Virus record (IMG/VR): IMGVR_UViG_3300037502_002993 | Location: 1 to 64,000 of that record | DNA: 64,000 nt | Strand: one strand, 5' to 3' | Part shown: positions 7,981 through 56,286 of the stretch, piece by piece | How the letters are laid out: every line of letters starts with the position of its first letter | Numbering within the stretch: position 1 is the stretch's first letter | The notes under the pieces: generated by a model | What the model was told of the DNA's origin: nothing | Databases searched by the model: none | What the model saw: only the letters and a program-made list of their open reading frames with translations | Position numbers and translations under genes: made by a program

Positions 7981-10560
7981 TTAAAGACGTAGGGTTCGGT
8001 GAGACTTGACTTTTCCGTGAAAGTAGGACTTCTTGTTGCGGTGATAGGCCAGGTGGTGAGGGATATCCACACAGACGAAGTAACACATCCGTGGGGTGAC
8101 CTCTGGAAAGTCCTTCAGTGGCCTCAGGCGCCCAAGGATCTGGAGGTTGTCCTTTTTGGAGTTCATGGCATGTAGCAACACCACCTCCTTTAAGTTCCTC
8201 ACATCTACCCCCGTGCCACTGCTCTTCGCTGTACTGACGGTAATGTCTTGCTTTAAGAGTTTGTTATACGGAATGCCCTGGTAGTAGGGTCCGATGGCGA
8301 ACTGCTGCTTGTAGTGAGCCCTGAGGGCCTCTGAGACCTTATCAATGAACGCGACCGTGGCACAGAGGACCAATGCCTTATGCCCCTTCTCAAACTCTCG
8401 AACAAACACCGCATCGAGCACCTTTACAATCTTTCGGATGTAGGCCTCAAACCGTGGCTTGTTCTTGAGCATCTGTGACTCGTAACGCATGTGAGAATAC
8501 ATCCCCCGCATGGGTACGAGAAAGTCCCGTTGATGGATGGGTAGGTCATTATACAGCAGACCAATCACATCTTGATAGACCTTGTGTTCAGGTAGTTGAC
8601 AATGGGTCTCCTCTGGCAGCATGACATTGATCATACCTGTGACGAAATCATTCCCCGTGAACGGCGTAGCTGATAGGTTAATGATTTTACGTACATTGGA
8701 GAATAGATCAATCCGAAAGTAAAGGCCCGGGTCCTCCTGGATCTCGTCATTGATCTGCACACCTATGCCCGCTACCTCATGGAAGGTCGTGGGAAGACAC
8801 CCGTACTCTTCTAAACACGCCTGCTCCCCGTTTTCTTCGAGGTAGTTCAGAAACGCCCGGTAGGTGGCATTACTGATCATAACGCAATCAGCCTTCACCT
8901 TGCCCTCAAGCGCCTGACGGATGAACGCCTTGAGCTTGGGCGATCCATCGATGGTGTAATAACGATGCTCGACCCTTTTCTTTCCAAAGGCGTCATTAAG
9001 GGTCCCTACCCACAGATCAAAGTACTTAGGGGGGATCATAATCGCGAAGCGCATACCGAGTGCAACACATGCTAACATGGTCGTAAGTGAGTTGTGGGTG
9101 ACGATAAAGTCATCAGTCACATAGAGATGATCCGGGTGTGCTATCGTGATACATTGGGTAGGTTCATCCCCAATATACTCAACTGACCGCACTCTAAGTT
9201 TGAGTTCCTCCGAGTACTGGTTGGTCTCTTCTAGACGATCACGTTTACGTGGTAATCGGAAGAGTTTCCGCTGTCGCGGGTGACGGATATTTACCTGGTA
9301 GGCGATGCGCCCGTTACGTTTCTCGCCATTGTGGGTATAAGTAGGGTTGCGTTCACTGATACTGGCAATACCACCGACCGAACGCACTAGGTACTGAACC
9401 TGGGCGGCCAATACTCGGCTGGTACTGCAGAAGGAGACTGTTCCACTGGTTCCTTTACCAGGTTTGTCTACAGTGCCGTCAGTGTCCATCAGGCCCTGGA
9501 GGATCGCATACCGCTGTTCCAGAGAGCCATGTAGGTATTCCTTGGGAATGAACTTCTCCCAACTCCGTCTACCCCACAGTCCGTAGTCTTTTAAGGCTGT
9601 CCGGTATGGGTGCCCTCCATTGGTATATCGGAGCGTGCGGGTTTTATGACCGATGTCATTCCAGTAACTACCTTCAGGCGCCTCAGCTAACACCTCATCG
9701 AAGATGAAATCGTCTAGTTTTGTTATGTTAATAACACCGTTACTAATACCCCCATCACCTAGGATGACTCCTAGTGAGTACGGAGGAATCTTAACATCCG
9801 CAGCCGGACCGTCTTCTGGTTTGCAGAGCGGTATGTACACGCGCGGATTCGGCATCTCACACAACCGCTTGACTTCCAGGGTATCGACTGTTCTCCATCT
9901 ACGGTGCGGAACCGTGTTCACATAAAACACTTTCCAAAGATGTTCAGGACCAGCGTCTGTGTAGCGTCCATCCCAAAAAGTGACTCGATAAAACGGCGTC
10001 ACTCCTTGCGGGTGAACGGCAGTTACTTGTGTGGTGGTGCCGTCCCAAGCAGTGACTTCAGTACCGACCTTCATATCCCCCATGGTGGACCACCCGCCAG
10101 GGATTTTGATCTTAGATGATAATGGCTGTTGCTTACCTCCACCGGTCTGAAGGTAAAGGGCATTGGAGTAACTGTCATTAGACAGGTCACTTACCAGGGG
10201 TATTTGATAATCGCGGGCCTCAATCCCCTTACGGATCTTAAGCTTGAGGGGCTCTGCCTTAGGTACGGCGCGATGGGTGTGGGTGATCACTCGTTCAACG
10301 TAACCGTATTCCTCGATGAAACGTAGGAAGTCAGGTAAGTGGTGTCGATGGAGATAGAGCACCTGACGATCATGGGTGAGGCCAAAGAAACGTTTCTTTA
10401 ATACCATTTCAACGCGACCAAAGCGGTCGGTCTCGGGCTCGACTAGTTTCAGCCCTTTTAGGTACTCACCGATGATCTCCAAGAACTTGGGCTCGTAGCC
10501 CGAAATGCGACACCCGTGGGTGTAGTGCTCAACGTGCAAAGAAAAAGCCATCAGTGTCAT
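7981..10560 (-). CDS. SF2 (UvsW-like) helicase, phiKZ gp75-like, containing an intein
   Basis: RDYQ, Walker A QTGGGK|S split by an intein, DEIQ, SATP, QILGRLR. Confidence 0.9.
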   Translation of the reverse strand: MTLMAFSLHVEHYTHGCRISGYEPKFLEIIGEYLKGLKLVEPETDRFGRVEMVLKKRFFGLTHDRQVLYLHRHHLPDFLRFIEEYGYVERVITHTHRAVPKAEPLKLKIRKGIEARDYQIPLVSDLSNDSYSNALYLQTGGGKQQPLSSKIKIPGGWSTMGDMKVGTEVTAWDGTTTQVTAVHPQGVTPFYRVTFWDGRYTDAGPEHLWKVFYVNTVPHRRWRTVDTLEVKRLCEMPNPRVYIPLCKPEDGPAADVKIPPYSLGVILGDGGISNGVINITKLDDFIFDEVLAEAPEGSYWNDIGHKTRTLRYTNGGHPYRTALKDYGLWGRRSWEKFIPKEYLHGSLEQRYAILQGLMDTDGTVDKPGKGTSGTVSFCSTSRVLAAQVQYLVRSVGGIASISERNPTYTHNGEKRNGRIAYQVNIRHPRQRKLFRLPRKRDRLEETNQYSEELKLRVRSVEYIGDEPTQCITIAHPDHLYVTDDFIVTHNSLTTMLACVALGMRFAIMIPPKYFDLWVGTLNDAFGKKRVEHRYYTIDGSPKLKAFIRQALEGKVKADCVMISNATYRAFLNYLEENGEQACLEEYGCLPTTFHEVAGIGVQINDEIQEDPGLYFRIDLFSNVRKIINLSATPFTGNDFVTGMINVMLPEETHCQLPEHKVYQDVIGLLYNDLPIHQRDFLVPMRGMYSHMRYESQMLKNKPRFEAYIRKIVKVLDAVFVREFEKGHKALVLCATVAFIDKVSEALRAHYKQQFAIGPYYQGIPYNKLLKQDITVSTAKSSGTGVDVRNLKEVVLLHAMNSKKDNLQILGRLRPLKDFPEVTPRMCYFVCVDIPHHLAYHRNKKSYFHGKVKSHRTLRL
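9091..10131 (-). mobile_element. Class 3-type intein with LAGLIDADG endonuclease (347 aa)
   Basis: Starts QQPLSSKI right after Walker A GK and ends VTHN|S; EHLW, TQCITI, and LAGLIDADG motifs LGVILGDGG and LQGLMDTDG. Confidence 0.9.
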
Positions 10561-29756: not shown

Positions 29757-31736
29757 TCAGTAGTAACGACCGGAACCCGCCACGTTGCCCTGATAGACAT
29801 GCCCGCGGTTCTGGTTCACCGTGGAACCGCCCTGGTGAATGTGTGCCTGACCGTCCACCGCGAACTGACTCATGAACTGGTTGCCGGCGAAGCGCTGGTT
29901 GCCACCCAGGACCTGAGAGATGTTCTCCAGCTCGACCTGCAAACCAGCACCAGCAGTGGCATCGTCCAGTGCCTTGATGAAACCAGGCGTCAGCGCCAGA
30001 CGCGCAGCACGACCAGTCACCTCCACACGAGAGCCCGCGTACTGACGGGTCAGCTTCTCCAGGCGATCCAGGCGCATGGCAGCCGGCATGGTGCCGAAGC
30101 CGCCCGGGTTGTTGCCGCAGAAGATCGCGTACCACTCATCGAACGCCACCTGGTCGCCCTTGGTGATGTTGAGCATCGCCAGCACGTCCAGTTCACGCAG
30201 ATCGCGGATCTGACCCTGATCATCCACCCAGCGACCCAGCAGGATCTCCTGGTTGGTGTGACGTACCAGTGGATCGCCCTCAGCAATGGCCTGGGAGAAA
30301 CGACCACTGGTCAGGTTATCAGCCGCGGCAATCAGACGCTTGCGTGCCTGGTTCTGGTACTTGCCAGGGGTGGCAGCGTCCAGCAGGAAGGTTTCGAAGG
30401 CGGAGTTCTCACTCATCGGCTGTACGTCGATGAGAAACGCCGGCATCGCTTCCATGGCATGACGAACGAACTCCAGGAAGTTCTGATCGGAGTAGTTCTT
30501 GGCCTTCAGGTCCACGTACTGGAACTCGGAGAAGGGCATCTTGTAGCCCAGTGCACCGATATCCTTCCAGTCCACCCCTTTCACACCCAGGCGCGGCTTG
30601 AGGGCTTCCAGCCAGGCGTAGTTGTAGGTCAGGCGGAATGCGTTGGACAGACCCAGCATGTAGAACTCACCCGTCTGGGACTGGATGTGCGGGGCCGGGC
30701 AGTTATTGGTGATGACCACAGTGGGCATGAAGGGTTGGGTCACCTGCTGCTGATTGGGAGAACCCCAACCGCCCTGCGGCTGACCACCGATGACACGACC
30801 GCCAGTGAACTCCACCCCAACGAAGCAGGACAGTTCATTGAGGGCGGTGTTCTCCTCGTAGAACTCATCCTCGTCCTTGGTATCCCCTTCGACCTGAGCG
30901 CCCATCCGCACAATCACGTCAGAGCGGATCGGATTGCCGACAATGTCGAACTTCGGCTCAGCAGTGAAGTCGAAAGAGGCTACGAAGCGGGTGTTGCTCG
31001 CTGCCTGACCGTTTTCGTTGATCGGCTTGAGGTCTTCGATACGGAAGGGCACTTCCCCAGCGAAGATCTGGATGCCATCGTCCACCCGGTTGACGGAATC
31101 GATCAGCAGGCGCTTGACCTCCACGGACTCCAGCTTGAAGTCGAAGTGACGTGGCACCAGAATGGGACCTGCGTCGATCGCGGTGACGTCACGACCTTCC
31201 GGCTGAATGCCCAGTTGGTTGAAGACGGTGTTGACCACCTTGGCCCAGTACTTCTCAGTGTAGACGTCCTGGCTGAAGGTTGTGACCTCGATCTGGGTCT
31301 GACCCACCCACTCCTTGCGCTTGCGCAGGGGGCGATCGGAATCCAGCATCACAACGCGGATGGCCACGGCGGTCTTCTGAGCGACCTGAGCGACCTTCAC
31401 CACCAGGATGGAACTACGACCCACACGGTGGGTTTCGGAGTCGAAGCGGATCAGGTGGAAGTCGTCGGGCATGCGCTGCATTTCGACTTCGGTTTTGTAG
31501 GCATCACGGATGGCGGTGAAGGCCTGGGAGGTGCGCTCTTCGCCACCGTCCATCTGACCGGAACGACGGAACACGGTGTTGATGTCACGGGGGTCGTTCA
31601 GGCCCCGTGCGGCGGGTTTGGGCGCTGCAGCACCCACATTACCGCCATAGCCAGTCGGACCACGACCCGTCGGCTGCGGTTGTGCCTTGGGCTGCTCGGG
31701 CTGGTTCTGGTTGCTTTCGTTATCGCGGATACCCAT
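29757..31736 (-). CDS. chmA: Chimallin, major nuclear shell protein (phiKZ gp54-like)
   Basis: 659 aa from MGIRDNE; directly upstream of the gp55-like gene; strong codon bias; disordered N-terminus; GNPIRSD, DIGALG, RDLRELD motifs. Confidence 0.85.
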   Translation of the reverse strand: MGIRDNESNQNQPEQPKAQPQPTGRGPTGYGGNVGAAAPKPAARGLNDPRDINTVFRRSGQMDGGEERTSQAFTAIRDAYKTEVEMQRMPDDFHLIRFDSETHRVGRSSILVVKVAQVAQKTAVAIRVVMLDSDRPLRKRKEWVGQTQIEVTTFSQDVYTEKYWAKVVNTVFNQLGIQPEGRDVTAIDAGPILVPRHFDFKLESVEVKRLLIDSVNRVDDGIQIFAGEVPFRIEDLKPINENGQAASNTRFVASFDFTAEPKFDIVGNPIRSDVIVRMGAQVEGDTKDEDEFYEENTALNELSCFVGVEFTGGRVIGGQPQGGWGSPNQQQVTQPFMPTVVITNNCPAPHIQSQTGEFYMLGLSNAFRLTYNYAWLEALKPRLGVKGVDWKDIGALGYKMPFSEFQYVDLKAKNYSDQNFLEFVRHAMEAMPAFLIDVQPMSENSAFETFLLDAATPGKYQNQARKRLIAAADNLTSGRFSQAIAEGDPLVRHTNQEILLGRWVDDQGQIRDLRELDVLAMLNITKGDQVAFDEWYAIFCGNNPGGFGTMPAAMRLDRLEKLTRQYAGSRVEVTGRAARLALTPGFIKALDDATAGAGLQVELENISQVLGGNQRFAGNQFMSQFAVDGQAHIHQGGSTVNQNRGHVYQGNVAGSGRYY

Positions 31737-31957
31737 GAGGGCTTTCTCCTTGCGTTTTATTGCAGTCGACTGCAATGCTGTCCAGTTAACTGGACGGCTC
31801 TTGCCTGTGAATGATGTGGGTTTCAAATCTGTTCGGATAAACCCACACCAGAATCCTTGCGTTACGACATACCGCTTAATGGCCTAGAAGGCCCGTGAGA
31901 CTGTCAGGTGACAATCCCCTATAAGATAACATTCCCAGTATTTTTCTACATGGGCAT

Positions 31958-50071: not shown

Positions 50072-51528
50072 TTGACACTCCCCTTCTTAAAAGAAGGGGA
50101 TTCTTGCTTCACAGAACTGACTTACCTTCGGTAAGGAAGGCAGAGGCCACTTTCTCCACAAGCGTTTAGTGAGTCCGTATGCCCTACGGCCTCTGCTAAA
50201 GTCACTACTCAAGCTACATCTAAGCGGTGTTCCTGTAAGAACACCGCAGTCAGTGTGTTCCTCAAATGGCTCGCTGGTGGGAGTAGCTCCAATCCCATCT
50301 TCTTAAGATTGATAGCGGCATTGTGATCACGATCATGTTGAGCGCTACAACTGGGACACTCCCACCAACGCTCGCTGAGCTTGAGTTTGTTCTTACCATG
50401 TAGTCGATGGCCACACGCACTGCAAGTCTGTGTACTCGGGAAGAATCTCTCTGCGATAATCACCTTGCAGTGCTGCGACTCATCGGCCTTGTAGATCAGT
50501 TGGGACAGGAACTGCCGCCATCCACAATCACTGATGTGTTTAGCGAGTCTCCTGTTCCTGACCATGCCTTCAATATTCAAGTTCTCAATAGCTATTGTGG
50601 AGCATTGGTCTACAAGGTTACGAGAGAGCTTATGCTGAAAGTCTAACCGACACCGCTTGGTTTTTGCGTATATTTTAGCGACTTTCAGCTGTTGCTTTCT
50701 GTAGTTACTGGAACCTTGCTTTTTCCTAGCAAGAGAGCGTTGCGCCCTCGCCAGTCTCCTGGCGTATTGCCCTTGGTATTTGGGATTGGCATATTCCCTT
50801 CCTTCTGAGTCCACGGCAAAGGTCTTAATCCCCAAATCCAATCCCAAATGGGCGTCTCCATTCGTGAGCCGGGGTTCACACTCGCAAATGAAACACGCGT
50901 AGTACTCTCCATTGGACTCACGAATGATACTGACAGAACTGGGTGGGGTGGGGAGGACCCCACCCCACTTCTCATGCTTCTGTTTGTAACTCCATTTAGT
51001 TTTGATAGGGGAATGCATGGCTTTAGCCATGCGGAATTCTCCACTCTCCAAATCTAAGGAGAATGCAGAGTTCGTCAGCCGGATGGACTGACGACTGAGT
51101 CGTTTTTTAAACTTGGGAAATCCAACTTTCCCTTTCCCTTTGAAAAAGGATTGGAAAGCAGTCCCGAGGTCCCTAAGGGACTGTTGTAAGATGACTGAGG
51201 AGACCTCATAGAGAAACCCATGCTCTTTCTTTAACTCGGGGAGTCTCACCACGAGTGCATTCGCACTCAGTTTGGGTTTCTCTAGTGTTGGGTTTGTCTG
51301 GTAAGCCTCATACTCCTCCCGTACCCTGTTGAGTACTTGATTCCAGACAAACCGTTTACAGCCAAATGACCTCGCCAGGAGGTCACGTTGTATGGCATTC
51401 GGATAGAGCCGAAAGCGAAACGCTTTCGTAACCATGATGACCTCCTGGGAAAGTGGATTGGTGTATATGTTAGTATTTAGTGGTCTTATATCCCCGCCAT
51501 AAATGACGGGGTTTTACGACCACAACTG
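50072..51528 (-). mobile_element. Complete tnpB-only IS200/IS605 (IS1341-group) element, copy 4
   Basis: Minus strand: TTAT|CAGTTGTGG left end with CCCCGTC-ATTTAT-GGCGGGG hairpin, tnpB, omegaRNA, right-end hairpin and TCAA; no target duplication. Confidence 0.93.
50209..51435 (-). CDS. tnpB: TnpB RNA-guided endonuclease
   Basis: KAFRFRLYPN, FGC.RFVWN, GFPKFKK, RuvC D (GLDLG), E (IENL) and D (DRD.NAA), CSAC..CPSC. Confidence 0.95.
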   Translation of the reverse strand: MVTKAFRFRLYPNAIQRDLLARSFGCKRFVWNQVLNRVREEYEAYQTNPTLEKPKLSANALVVRLPELKKEHGFLYEVSSVILQQSLRDLGTAFQSFFKGKGKVGFPKFKKRLSRQSIRLTNSAFSLDLESGEFRMAKAMHSPIKTKWSYKQKHEKWGGVLPTPPSSVSIIRESNGEYYACFICECEPRLTNGDAHLGLDLGIKTFAVDSEGREYANPKYQGQYARRLARAQRSLARKKQGSSNYRKQQLKVAKIYAKTKRCRLDFQHKLSRNLVDQCSTIAIENLNIEGMVRNRRLAKHISDCGWRQFLSQLIYKADESQHCKVIIAERFFPSTQTCSACGHRLHGKNKLKLSERWWECPSCSAQHDRDHNAAINLKKMGLELLPPASHLRNTLTAVFLQEHRLDVA

Positions 51529-52164: not shown

Positions 52165-52936
52165 CTTCTGTGGTTTCAGGCGGTTCGTTTTCCAAATTGA
52201 TCAACTTACCGAACAGTACGGCAGAAGCAGATATCACGTCATCCATAAAGGCATACACGTTCTGGATAAGGTAGAACGGCTTACCCACTGCCTTTACATG
52301 GATGTCCTGTCCGCAATAACGCCCCTTGTGAAGCTGCTCGATTAACCCAGCCACGTGGGCGACATACCCCGCATAATGGTACCCGCCAGTATGAATGGTA
52401 GTATCCTCAAGTTCTATCATACCAGGCTCAACGAAGAAGTCATGTTCCTTATGTTTGATCGACCGGAAGTGTTCTCCATCCCAGAGGAGTTGGTTTTTGC
52501 CGAGGTAGTCTGCACTGATAAGAATCAGTCCGTCGGCAATAAACATGTGCGGCTCATTACCTCCGAAGTGGGTTAGCTCCCGCATCCAGAAGGTCCATTC
52601 CTCTTCCGGTATCGCCTCGATGACGGCTGCAAGTTCTATCCCGTTAGTGATGGTGATCACCCTCACCACAGTGACCTCAGCACCCCCACCCGAAAAGAAA
52701 TCACTCATGTGGTAGGCGATTTCCGGGTTCTCCAACAACGCCCCAACTAAAGGGTGGGTCTCAGGAACTTCGAAGATGTCACAGATGAGCTCTTTGGCTG
52801 GGTTCAGAGAGACTGTCTCTTCCCACGGACGCGAGTAGCGATAGACGATGTGCGCGAGAGCTATTGGGTCCTTTTTATACATGTCCGGGTTAAGGCGAAA
52901 CAGTGGAGTATTGGCCAGTTTTGTTAAATCGATCAT
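52151..52936 (-). CDS. Hypothetical protein
   Basis: GAGG RBS, 261 aa. Confidence 0.7.
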   Translation of the reverse strand: MIDLTKLANTPLFRLNPDMYKKDPIALAHIVYRYSRPWEETVSLNPAKELICDIFEVPETHPLVGALLENPEIAYHMSDFFSGGGAEVTVVRVITITNGIELAAVIEAIPEEEWTFWMRELTHFGGNEPHMFIADGLILISADYLGKNQLLWDGEHFRSIKHKEHDFFVEPGMIELEDTTIHTGGYHYAGYVAHVAGLIEQLHKGRYCGQDIHVKAVGKPFYLIQNVYAFMDDVISASAVLFGKLINLENEPPETTEVDGG

Positions 52937-53070
52937 TTTAATTACCTCGGTTCTTCGGTTTCATAGCAGTTTCCCGTCAGTCTTAGGCCAGGTTCAAGGT
53001 TCAATGTTTTTCCCAGAGAACCGATTTCGTGGTGTATGCAGTATACACCATAGCAGCTTAATGAATGTTA

Positions 53071-53310
53071 CTAGCCTCTTCCTGAAAAATGAACACCGTT
53101 GGCAATAACAAAACCTTCGGGATCGACATAAATCCTTCCGTTTTTACAAGGTTCGCCATTTACCGTTATGGTTCTTGGTCCGCGAACCTGAATGTCCATC
53201 TCCTCTAGCCACGCGCTAATGGCATTAGCCACTTCGTCACCTGATAGTTCAATTTTCACACCTGGCCCAAACATGGTTATTCCGTCACCATATTCAATAT
53301 TCATTACCAT
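53071..53310 (-). CDS. Small hypothetical protein
   Basis: AAGGAG RBS; GPGV.IELSGDEVA..RIYVDP motifs. Confidence 0.7.
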   Translation of the reverse strand: MVMNIEYGDGITMFGPGVKIELSGDEVANAISAWLEEMDIQVRGPRTITVNGEPCKNGRIYVDPEGFVIANGVHFSGRG

Positions 53311-53409
53311 ACTCCTTGTTATTAACCATAGGCCCCTCCCATGAGCGGGAGGGGCCTTGTACTGATTTATACCGCTACATCACCGAAATCAATCAGTCCA
53401 TGTGGGTGG

Positions 53410-55083
53410 TTAAACTGCCGCCTGTGGAAATTTAATCGCAGGGAGTGGTTCATAATTGACGAGTTCGAAATCGTCAATTATGAATTCATTGAGTTCTTTA
53501 CGATTTCTATTTATTACTACCTGAGGTTTGTCCTCTCCACACTCCGCGTTTCTCCCAAGTTGTTCAACAATCCCCTCAATTTGGTTTTTATAAATATGTA
53601 CGTCGCCCCCTGTCCAAATAAATTCCCCCACTTCCATATTCACAACTTGAGCAACCATCATTAACAGTAGTGAGTAGGAAGCTATGTTGTAGGGAACACC
53701 CAGACAAAAATCCGCAGACCTCTGAAAAAGCTGACAGGATAGTCTATAACGATCGCCACCGGGGATGGGTTTCGCGTAAAACTGAAACATAACGTGACAC
53801 GGAGGGAGTGCTTGGAGTCCTTGAGCGGGATTTAAGTTAGGTTGAATTGTTTCATTGGACAAAACTTCAGGATTCCAACCACTGACAATGTGTCTTCTTG
53901 AGTTAGGTCTTTCTCTGAGCCCTTTTATGAGGTCTGATATCTGATCTGAGAAGAGTCTCCGCCTGACTAATTTACCCTCAGGAGGGCTGTAGTGTTCAAT
54001 TTTATATCCATCGAACTTCCTACTCTCATAGATACCATTTCTGAAATTACGGTAGGTTTCTACGTTGACACCAAGAAATCGCGTAAAATCAGTTATTGTT
54101 TCAAAGAGATATTTATTACCGGAAGTATCTTCCACTTCAACAGGAACACCATCCCTATTTAGTCCGATGTTGTACGATCTAGGTAGAAATATAGTAGTCG
54201 ATATATCGTAGCAATTACTCCCAAAATAATCTTTGTCAAGGGAGTAAAGATGTGGAGTTTGGCACCACTCTTCGTAAAAGGGAATACAGGAAATGTCTTC
54301 CAGGAAATTTTCGAAACACAACCACCGTGGCGACACATAAGTGCCCTCTAACCCATAATACTTATACGAAGGGTGGGTGGCCTGATGACACCTCACTACC
54401 ATGTTTCTCCAAAGTGAATAAGCCTGCTCGTTAAAAGGGCGCTTGGGATTTCCTATACATGCTACATCTGCGACAGATGGAACATGTGTGTCTTTGACGT
54501 GAATATTGTTTCTTATATTTGGTCTGGTGACTTCAGCGTAATTTCCCGTGTTTACAAATCTTACTAAATAAATAGTATTACGACCCCCAAGAGTCCCTAA
54601 CTCTTTTATAATCTCGTACGGGTCACCGTAATTTTCCTGGAACCTTTCCAGATCACCCGCATATTCGCTATCAATATGCTCGGGACGACTTGCTATAGGT
54701 AGCTCAACTGGTCCCGGTGCAGGGCCGGTTCGTACATCCACTAATTCAGCAAACGGTGATTGTACAGGCCAGCGTCTCCACATGGCCGAATATATCGGGC
54801 CTAAGTTACCTTCATCGTCAGCCCAAGCGTTCCAAATGTTCACTCCTCTACTCTTAAGGTAGAAATTATTAGTATCACCCCTCAGGAACCACAGGAGTTC
54901 GTGTATGATCGAACGCAGGTTGATATTTTTTGTTAGTAGTAAAGGAAAATGTTCGCTTACATTGAAACGCATCTGCTTACCGATCAGTGATAGAGTTCCT
55001 ACCCCAGTCCGGTCATCAGTGTCTATGCCGTCGTTGAGAATATCCCTGGCAATATTTAAATACTGCTTATCTACACTATTCAT
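53410..55083 (-). CDS. thyA: Thymidylate synthase with a ~270-aa in-frame endonuclease-like insertion
   Basis: DRTGVGT, ELLWFLRG, LGPIY, SRRHIV, ALPPCH, QRSAD, PYNIASY, DVHIY. Confidence 0.93.
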   Translation of the reverse strand: MNSVDKQYLNIARDILNDGIDTDDRTGVGTLSLIGKQMRFNVSEHFPLLLTKNINLRSIIHELLWFLRGDTNNFYLKSRGVNIWNAWADDEGNLGPIYSAMWRRWPVQSPFAELVDVRTGPAPGPVELPIASRPEHIDSEYAGDLERFQENYGDPYEIIKELGTLGGRNTIYLVRFVNTGNYAEVTRPNIRNNIHVKDTHVPSVADVACIGNPKRPFNEQAYSLWRNMVVRCHQATHPSYKYYGLEGTYVSPRWLCFENFLEDISCIPFYEEWCQTPHLYSLDKDYFGSNCYDISTTIFLPRSYNIGLNRDGVPVEVEDTSGNKYLFETITDFTRFLGVNVETYRNFRNGIYESRKFDGYKIEHYSPPEGKLVRRRLFSDQISDLIKGLRERPNSRRHIVSGWNPEVLSNETIQPNLNPAQGLQALPPCHVMFQFYAKPIPGGDRYRLSCQLFQRSADFCLGVPYNIASYSLLLMMVAQVVNMEVGEFIWTGGDVHIYKNQIEGIVEQLGRNAECGEDKPQVVINRNRKELNEFIIDDFELVNYEPLPAIKFPQAAV

Positions 55084-55128
55084 TCCCACTCCTATTAACA
55101 TAGTCAATAAACAATTGTTTGTTGTTTA

Positions 55129-55419
55129 TTATTTATCTGTTTTGGCTTCTTCCACTATAGTGAAAGGCATCTTGGGAAGACCGTGTTTCAGCGTGTGTGA
55201 AAACATTGACTTGTGAGAGATGTCCTCTCCTTTATAGGTGGGATTCAGATTTTCGACGTCACCCCCAGAAAGCTCTATGCGCTTTCGCCAGGTCAGGGGT
55301 GACGTGCAGGGCGCCTGTAGTCCCTCGGTATTTTCATCGGTAATGCCGCACTTAACGCACTTGTGATCATAGAGAGATGAACTCATTGACATCCTGAGAA
55401 CGTGGCTATCGTGGTACAT
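55129..55419 (-). CDS. Hypothetical protein with CxxC
   Basis: AAGGA RBS. Confidence 0.55.
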   Translation of the reverse strand: MYHDSHVLRMSMSSSLYDHKCVKCGITDENTEGLQAPCTSPLTWRKRIELSGGDVENLNPTYKGEDISHKSMFSHTLKHGLPKMPFTIVEEAKTDK

Positions 55420-55599
55420 GGTGTATTTCCTTTTTGATGTTAAAATAGAAGGGTCGTTATACTGCTACTTCTTTCTGCTGTACTGGATCGAGAATGAAGC
55501 GGTACTGCATGGCGGCGTCATAGACGCTCCCCTGCAAATGTTGAGGCCAGTCTTCGCGGTTTAGACCAGAGTATTTTGAGGGGGGATAACTACCTTTCT

Positions 55600-56286
55600 T
55601 CAGTCAGTGAGGTTATCTAGTCCACCGGACCATTTCTCTACGTTCTTCTTGATGGTTTTGAGTAAGTCAAAGTCGAACATGATGTCAACTTGTTCAACAT
55701 CATTCACCATGACGAACGTAATCTTACCACCGTCTGTTACAGTCCCTGAAAGACGGTAACCATTTTCTGTCATTGCGATTAACGCATTTGCAGTGATCAA
55801 TATTGGTGTGTGGTTATTGGTAGTGGGAAGCTCTTGCTCTTTTGCAAACGCAATGAAGGTATCAATTACCTCAGCCTCACTTGACCCCACAAAGGGGATG
55901 GATTGTTCTGTAATGGGTTTTGAGTGAAAAGTGCTCAACTTCCAGTTATCGAGGTTGTTATCCCAGGTCTCTTTGGTGGGGGACAGGGTATTAAACAAGG
56001 TAATGATGATCTCAGCATCCGGCGGTTCGCCTATACCGGCAAACGTTAGCTTGGTCCAGTCATAGCGCCCTGGGATTTTATCAGTTTCACTATGTTGTTC
56101 TCCGACTTCTTTCACCACGGCAATCTCGTCCCGAATGCCTTTTGCAAGGTGAAGAAGCGATGGGCGATTCATCTCGCCCGAGGTATGGATCTCTTCAATG
56201 TTATCAGCGAACTCACTGAGGTAAGTAATAGTTTCCTTTACGTTGCGATTGGTCTGTAGTAATGCAAACGACGTCACGTTTGACAT
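55600..56286 (-). CDS. Hypothetical protein (start MSNVTS)
   Basis: GAGG RBS. Confidence 0.65.
   Translation of the reverse strand: MSNVTSFALLQTNRNVKETITYLSEFADNIEEIHTSGEMNRPSLLHLAKGIRDEIAVVKEVGEQHSETDKIPGRYDWTKLTFAGIGEPPDAEIIITLFNTLSPTKETWDNNLDNWKLSTFHSKPITEQSIPFVGSSEAEVIDTFIAFAKEQELPTTNNHTPILITANALIAMTENGYRLSGTVTDGGKITFVMVNDVEQVDIMFDFDLLKTIKKNVEKWSGGLDNLTD

Follow-up and report, generated by a model that had tools for sequence, protein, structure and literature searches.

Can a phage enzyme carry a homing-endonuclease-like module inside its own reading frame without splicing it out? This question was raised by a thyA gene in a 64,000-nucleotide stretch of DNA (here called the window, positions 1 to 64,000 of the IMG/VR record IMGVR_UViG_3300037502_002993). 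The record is 220.6 kb long, has terminal repeats and was sampled from subsurface and freshwater metagenomes. It encodes a PhuZ tubulin, split RNA polymerase beta subunits, a family-B-like DNA polymerase and an NAD-dependent ligase, and is therefore a phiKZ-like (nucleus-forming type) jumbo phage. A preliminary description, made from the sequence alone, had noticed about 270 residues between the WRRWP and DQI motifs of thymidylate synthase, where a short loop is normal. It had proposed a ThyA-nuclease fusion in which the element is tolerated in a surface loop rather than spliced.

The thyA gene and its insert

First, the limits of the gene were determined. The open reading frame at 53410..55107 on the minus strand reads 565 aa from a TTG. 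However, a relative that is about 95% identical within the gene (locus L081) has a stop codon just upstream of the shared ATG, and a Shine-Dalgarno sequence precedes this ATG by 5 nt. The real gene therefore encodes 557 aa. The Pfam profile PF00303 matched with an E-value of 2.2e-92 in two pieces, with profile positions 1-104 at 54760-55068 and 105-265 at 53419-53961, and no profile columns are lost. Exactly 273 residues lie in between. We conclude that the observation of the preliminary description is real: its coordinates are correct, and the sequence motifs that had led it to propose a phage HNH-like homing endonuclease pattern and a C-terminal HTH-like part are all present. Its remark that the gene is more AT-rich than the core genes also holds, but this applies to the whole gene and not only to the insert. 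The GC content of thyA is 42.5% against a window mean of 51.4% (sd 2.9), and only 1 of 312 windows of the same size is lower. GC3 is 0.37-0.47, compared with 0.59-0.67 in the polymerase, ligase, RNAP and PhuZ genes.

Features of the thyA locus in window coordinates (amino acid numbers refer to the 557-aa protein)
Position	Strand	Feature	Basis
53410..55083	minus	thyA with insert, 557 aa; the only thymidylate synthase gene in the 220.6 kb genome	ORF and translation; start fixed by L081 and the Shine-Dalgarno sequence; PF00303 E 2e-92; no second ThyA and no ThyX in the genome
55089..55093	minus	Shine-Dalgarno AGGAG, 5 nt upstream of the ATG at 55083	Read from the sequence
54766..55083	minus	ThyA N-terminal part (aa 1-106), ending in WRRWP	Pfam profile positions 1-104; DRTG, ELLWF and WRRW motifs
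53947..54765	minus	In-frame insert (aa 107-379, 273 aa)	Boundaries from two alignments; PHROG 2081 E 3e-31; dN/dS 0.11; AlphaFold2 pLDDT 89
54661..54765	minus	N-side junction strand and proline-rich linker (aa 107-141), absent from free-standing relatives	DSSP strand 112-116 in the full-length model; two alignments
54499..54660	minus	Predicted small SH3/Tudor-like beta-barrel (aa 142-195)	
54148..54456	minus	Conserved central domain (aa 210-312) with invariant W225, M228, R231, C232, G244, G247, W254 and F260; ends in a predicted beta-beta-alpha unit	
54157..54246	minus	Predicted beta-beta-alpha element with L-D283-K284-D285 ... T296 ... N (aa 280-309); candidate active site; canonical HNH histidine absent	DSSP E280-283, E298-301, H302-309; hhalign register against HNH_3
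53980..54147	minus	Predicted C-terminal HTH DNA-binding module (aa 313-368)	
53947..53979	minus	C-side junction strand (aa 369-379); may be native ThyA sequence, because insert-free phage A4 has a similar stretch	DSSP strand 371-375; junction comparison
53410..53946	minus	ThyA C-terminal part (aa 380-557 plus stop) with the catalytic Cys (PPCH) and the SRR, QRSxD, PYN and GDxHxY motifs	Pfam profile positions 105-265; motifs read in the translation; ThyA core TM 0.94 to E. coli TS

To see whether the host enzyme is intact, the catalytic Cys and the substrate-binding motifs (DRTG, ELLWF, WxxW, SRR, PCH, QRSxD, P(F/Y)N and GDxHxY) were read in the translation. All were present, and they are invariant in the alignment of relatives. 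An AlphaFold2 model of the full protein had a pLDDT of 87 and a pTM of 0.83. Its ThyA core superposed on E. coli TS in a Foldseek comparison with a TM of 0.94 (by target), an rmsd of 3.3 and an E-value of 1e-25. The insert would lie in the "small domain" region of TS, where Lactobacillus casei TS carries about 50 extra residues, and would therefore occupy a naturally variable surface site. When the gene was compared with L081, dN/dS was 0.03 for the ThyA parts and 0.11 for the insert (50 synonymous and 23 non-synonymous changes), indicating that the insert is under purifying selection as protein in the thyA frame.

Predicted domains and relatives of the insert

Modelled alone, the insert was predicted to consist of a junction strand with a proline-rich linker, a small beta-barrel, a conserved central domain ending in a strand-strand-helix unit, and an I-HmuI/NUMOD-like HTH, i.e. 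a modular DNA-binding domain of the kind associated with nucleases. The insert belongs to a phage family annotated as HNH or homing endonucleases. It matched PHROG 2081 "HNH endonuclease" and 100 viral models in BFVD at E<=0.001, several of them named homing endonuclease, I-HmuI-like or AP2. In contrast, no match was found in Pfam or NCBIfam, and profiles of 19 and of 47 sequences gave no hit to PDB sequences at E<=10. A Foldseek search of the PDB with the insert model returned nothing at E<=0.001, and its I-HmuI row had an rmsd of 16 and is not usable as a global match. A megablast of the gene against the phage collection found nothing, and a word search with the insert alone gave only 5 hits.

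Free-standing relatives of 150-390 aa are common in phages. They consist of the same barrel and central domain followed by AP2, NUMOD3, I-HmuI_NUMOD-like or other HTH modules, and they sit where homing endonuclease genes sit. They were found next to RNR genes (Sophrita, SPG24, P1048) and between terL and the portal gene (KIL4, 178 aa). In Klebsiella phage ZX22, a 172-aa relative lies between two terL fragments directly after an Rfam group I intron. Some lie beside thyA itself (loci L017 and L026-L028).

Whether the central domain is a nuclease is the weak point. No invariant histidine was found in the insert in alignments of 14, 19 or 47 sequences, and the motif is L-D-K/R-x-D where HNH_3 has (N/D)-H-I-D, so that the canonical general base at the end of strand 1 is absent. 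None of the 47 family members hit any Pfam HNH family at E<=0.1, and only the PHROG names say "HNH endonuclease". The similarity of the central domain to solved HNH folds was below usual significance. To our knowledge, no member of the family has been shown to cut DNA, and nuclease function is only putative.

Splicing and mobility

We then asked whether the insert might be removed as an intein or an intron. A Hint domain, the detection of which would have spoken against the preliminary description, was not found by Pfam at E<=1 on the whole protein or on the insert, nor did the model show one. At the junctions of 25 fusions the first insert residue was V, I, H, T, K, S, E or G, the last residue was S, I, V, F, T or R, and the following residue was always D or N, with no terminal His-Asn. 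A search of Rfam at E<=1 over 52500-56000 gave only a chance sRNA hit, whereas the same tool found a group I intron (RF00028, 66.6 bits) in the control locus L011. At the gathering threshold, Rfam detected no intron in the loci L017, L041 or L006. Within the insert there was no internal Shine-Dalgarno sequence with a start codon and no ORF longer than 60 aa in another frame.

The same insert occurs in frame in at least 30 other ThyA genes of very different phages, and is thus not a chance feature. These are 13 further metagenomic proteins (31-93% identical in the insert), 6 GenBank phages (Bacillus phages 015DV002 and Kioshi, Escherichia phages UE-S1 and ph0011, Klebsiella phages KP13-7 and phiKp_21) and at least 11 IMG/VR loci. 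The structure libraries add an ESM Atlas cluster of 54 viral ThyA proteins of about 552 aa and a BFVD ThyA of 564 aa. In every ThyA-embedded copy, a single open frame of 476-653 aa runs through both junctions, whereas an intron ORF would end in its own stop codon and would not need to stay in phase with the downstream exon. In-frame remnants were also seen. Krischvirus Td (Phi1/RB49 type, 406 aa) keeps 129 residues of the central domain at the same site, and the insert-free Asteriusvirus ThyA of phage A4 has 36 odd residues there, perhaps also a remnant. Such in-frame shrinkage is expected for an element that cannot excise.

To investigate mobility, the Asteriusvirus-like jumbo phages of E. 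coli, Klebsiella and Salmonella were compared. Of these, 34 records have the insert-free allele and 4 carry an insert. The alleles of UE-S1 and ph0011 are 83-92% identical to the empty allele at both gene ends, but identity falls to 43-60% for about 40-60 codons upstream and about 100 codons downstream of the insert, with different tract ends in the two phages. The two inserts are only about 50% identical to each other, and in the replaced tracts the genes resemble Krischvirus Td. This is what co-conversion during two independent invasions would leave, although the mosaic flanks could also come from ordinary recombination between divergent thyA alleles. On a ThyA tree calculated from full-length proteins with the insert columns masked, the carriers were scattered among non-carriers with at least 6 state changes, and the AU test rejected a single clade (p = 0.0028). 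However, the sample of non-carriers is biased towards relatives of the window gene. A second in-frame site about 15-20 codons upstream is used in the loci L035 and L040.

The window gene itself appears to have been transferred recently. It matches L081 at about 95% within the gene (90% over the 1,750-nt blastn match), and the match extends only from about 30 nt before the start to about 45 nt after the stop, whereas the neighbouring ligases of the two phages are 50% identical. Just upstream, L081 retains a 106-aa N-terminal remnant of a different thyA, cut about 10 codons before the insertion site. With the GC anomaly, this indicates that the whole thyA gene with its insert was recently transferred into this jumbo phage lineage. 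Ongoing homing in this lineage is not demonstrated by these data, since the nearest insert-free ThyA found is at most 59% identical and DNA contigs from three other metagenomes showed only insert-bearing alleles. A single 206-nt joint in the ThyA C-terminal part had only 23 letters on its shorter side and probably comes from another organism.

Interpretation and comparison with known elements

Taken together, we think it likely that the insert is a mobile element of the homing-endonuclease kind that has settled in frame in a permissive surface loop of ThyA. In this view, it is transcribed and translated from the thyA promoter and ribosome-binding site as one 557-aa polypeptide and is removed neither at the RNA nor at the protein level, and the ThyA fold closes around it so that the phage keeps dTMP synthesis. 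The module would come from a family of small free-standing and intron-associated phage proteins and would have spread among unrelated phages by recombination into the same short stretch of thyA, dragging flanking sequence with it or replacing the whole gene. Our analysis shows the architecture, the recurrence in frame, the purifying selection, the sporadic distribution, the mosaic flanks and the recent horizontal transfer. In contrast, the absence of splicing is inferred from comparative data alone, as no RNA run holding this sequence was found, and it is likewise an inference that TS activity is retained and that the embedded domain itself cleaves or nicks insert-free thyA alleles to drive its spread. 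The interpretation of the preliminary description is therefore supported in part: the in-frame position in a surface loop and the lack of detectable intein or group I intron features hold, whereas the lack of splicing is not shown and the assignment as a nuclease remains weak.

It remains possible, although we consider it unlikely, that the module derives from a homing endonuclease but no longer cuts DNA. Its nucleic-acid-binding domains might give ThyA a new property, for example tethering to DNA, to the replication or dNTP-synthesis machinery or to an mRNA, and its spread would then reflect ordinary gene exchange. The strong purifying selection, the missing catalytic His, the Lys or Arg next to the conserved Asp, and the fact that every sampled close relative of the window gene carries the insert, with no empty allele seen in four metagenomes, fit this view. 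However, the same LD(K/R)xD...N motif is kept in the free-standing and intron-associated relatives at classic homing sites, and whatever they do, the insert can probably do too. The sporadic distribution, the replaced flanks in Asteriusvirus, the two insertion sites and the decaying remnants in Td and perhaps in A4 fit a selfish cycle of invasion and decay better than a beneficial domain.

An unrecognised self-splicing element, either an intein without Hint motifs or an intron whose RNA core escapes Rfam, is very unlikely. It is true that mobile elements in essential phage genes normally splice, that thyA is a classic intron host and that the same gene is interrupted again at the "QRS" site in L017 and in the metagenomic sequences P0006, P0013 and P0014. 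However, all 819 nt encode a conserved and confidently folded predicted protein, which leaves no room for a ribozyme core, more than 30 diverged copies keep the frame open into the downstream part, no nucleophiles stand at either junction, and the shrunken Td remnant is still in frame. Equally improbable is that the insertion has inactivated thyA and left a decaying relic. The insert does lie a few residues after the folate-binding Trp residues, but the low dN/dS of the ThyA parts, the intact motifs and predicted core, the lack of a second TS gene and the conservation of the architecture across distant phages speak against it.

A more far-reaching reading, which we regard as tentative, is that homing endonucleases have a third way of living inside essential genes besides introns and inteins, in which the element works while embedded in the host enzyme and uses its expression signals. 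The family would then be an uncharacterised, histidine-less branch of the beta-beta-alpha nucleases that targets a short conserved stretch of thyA in phages from Bacillus myoviruses to E. coli and nucleus-forming jumbo phages. That the obligate ThyA dimer might pair two nicking domains into a double-strand cutter is pure speculation. Mobile endonuclease genes are thought to survive in essential genes only because introns or inteins remove them, and a widespread element that is simply tolerated as an extra domain would change that picture. It would explain some "long" enzymes in phage genomes, as these ThyA genes are currently annotated just as thymidylate synthase or hypothetical protein. It would also show one route by which enzymes acquire new domains, since full, shrunken and vestigial inserts are all seen at this site, and would point to a new nuclease-like family that recognises a conserved thyA sequence. 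Cultured E. coli phages with the insert (UE-S1, ph0011) and without it (A4, PBECO4, 121Q) make the idea directly testable.

Full-text literature searches found no description of this ThyA architecture, whereas homing elements as such are known. The nearest published case is the ShiLan domain in an actinobacteriophage DNA methylase (Arsenault, Gosselin and Gogarten 2025, PMC11855218). It is also a sporadically distributed insertion that keeps the host frame open, has no detectable intein or intron features, is predicted to stay in the protein as a protruding structure and is associated with an HNH endonuclease. In ShiLan, however, the endonuclease is read in another frame from an internal GTG and the in-frame product is only a hairpin-like loop, whereas here the endonuclease-like module is itself in the host frame and the host is an enzyme that the phage has in a single copy. 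With inteins that bear HNH or LAGLIDADG endonuclease domains, the insert shares the in-frame insertion of an endonuclease-type element at a conserved site of a nucleotide-metabolism enzyme, but it has no Hint splicing domain, no N-terminal Cys/Ser and no C-terminal His-Asn followed by Cys/Ser/Thr. From the intron-encoded and free-standing modular HNH homing endonucleases of the I-HmuI type (Pfam HNH_3 plus NUMOD modules) it differs by the lack of a conserved His and of any match to a Pfam HNH model, and its N-terminal barrel and the long helical part of the central domain are not I-HmuI-like.

The group I introns of phage thymidylate synthase genes (T4 td with I-TevI; Bacillus phage beta22; phage Bobb, PMC4528723) share the host gene, the logic of a mobile element in a conserved stretch of thyA and the co-conversion of flanking exon sequence. 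These introns lie at the "QRS" active-site region, have a ribozyme core and a separately terminated ORF, and are spliced. The element described here lies about 80 codons upstream, has no detectable ribozyme and is inferred to be read through. In L017, both kinds of interruption coexist in one gene: the in-frame insert is accompanied by a second interruption at the classic "QRS" intron site, and this one does have stop codons and separate HNH_3 and GIY-YIG-like ORFs.

Interruptions and apparent relics of thyA in other phages

In the viral contig L081, whose thyA::insert gene is a close relative of that in the window, a 106-aa amino-terminal fragment of a different ThyA was found directly upstream of the intact fusion gene. 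The fragment is 47-54% identical to the fusion genes and is truncated about 10 codons before the insertion site. It looks like the relic of a resident thyA that was displaced by the incoming gene.

In L017, a viral contig of 324 kb, thyA is surrounded and interrupted several times. A free-standing member of the same family ends 1 nt before thyA, and the in-frame insert is present in the gene. The gene is then broken at the 'QRS' site by about 1.8 kb, holding an HNH_3-type ORF and a GIY-YIG/NUMOD-like ORF before the last exon. When this interruption was searched with Rfam, no intron core was detected. The three metagenomic ThyA::insert proteins P0006, P0013 and P0014 end a few residues after 'YQR', at the same place where L017 is interrupted, which suggests further intron-like interruptions at the classic td site in insert-bearing genes.

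In the loci L035 and L040, a related module without the beta-barrel is inserted in frame at a different thyA site, between 'IWD.W' and 'G(D/E)LGP.YG', upstream of the WRxW motif. Krischvirus Td, as seen in Escherichia phage Phi1 and also in RB49-type phages (search hits H49-H64), is 406 aa long and is annotated simply as Td. It holds a 129-aa in-frame remnant of the central domain at the same site as the full insert, but lacks the barrel and the HTH.

Coordinates of the additional features in the window and in other loci
Sequence	Position	Strand	Feature
Window	7981-10560	-	859-aa ORF
Window	29757-31826	-	689-aa ORF
Window	29799-31814	+	671-aa ORF
Window	50209-51435	-	408-aa TnpB/OrfB-type transposase
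L081	3586-3906		Fragment of a different ThyA
L017	1855-6278		thyA with its surrounding and interrupting elements
L035	2605-4014		thyA with the module at the different site
L040	2680-4140		thyA with the module at the different site
L008, Escherichia phage Phi1	998-2215		td
L011, Klebsiella phage vB_KpnP_ZX22	691-3323		terL region
L011	1200-1445		Group I intron (RF00028)
L011	1477-1995		172-aa relative of the insert
L006, Lactococcus phage P1048	3258-4657		Class Ib RNR beta subunit, in two pieces

Relatives of the insert beside other split genes

In Klebsiella phage vB_KpnP_ZX22, terL is annotated as two CDSs. Between them lie a group I intron, recognised by Rfam with 66.6 bits, and the relative of the insert, which looks like an intron-borne member of the family. 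In Lactococcus phage P1048, the two annotated pieces of the class Ib RNR beta subunit are separated by about 530 nt and follow right after the free-standing relative of the insert. Here, Rfam found no intron at gathering threshold.

Other open reading frames in the window

The transposase (PHROG 506, E 5.5e-115) lies about 2 kb downstream of thyA in this jumbo phage, in the stretch that has no DNA-level counterpart in the related contig L081. The 859-aa ORF has moderate PHROG hits to terminase large subunit, primase and helicase families at once and is probably a P-loop/helicase fusion. The ORFs of 689 and 671 aa are open on opposite strands over the same 2 kb, and at most one of them is likely to be a gene.
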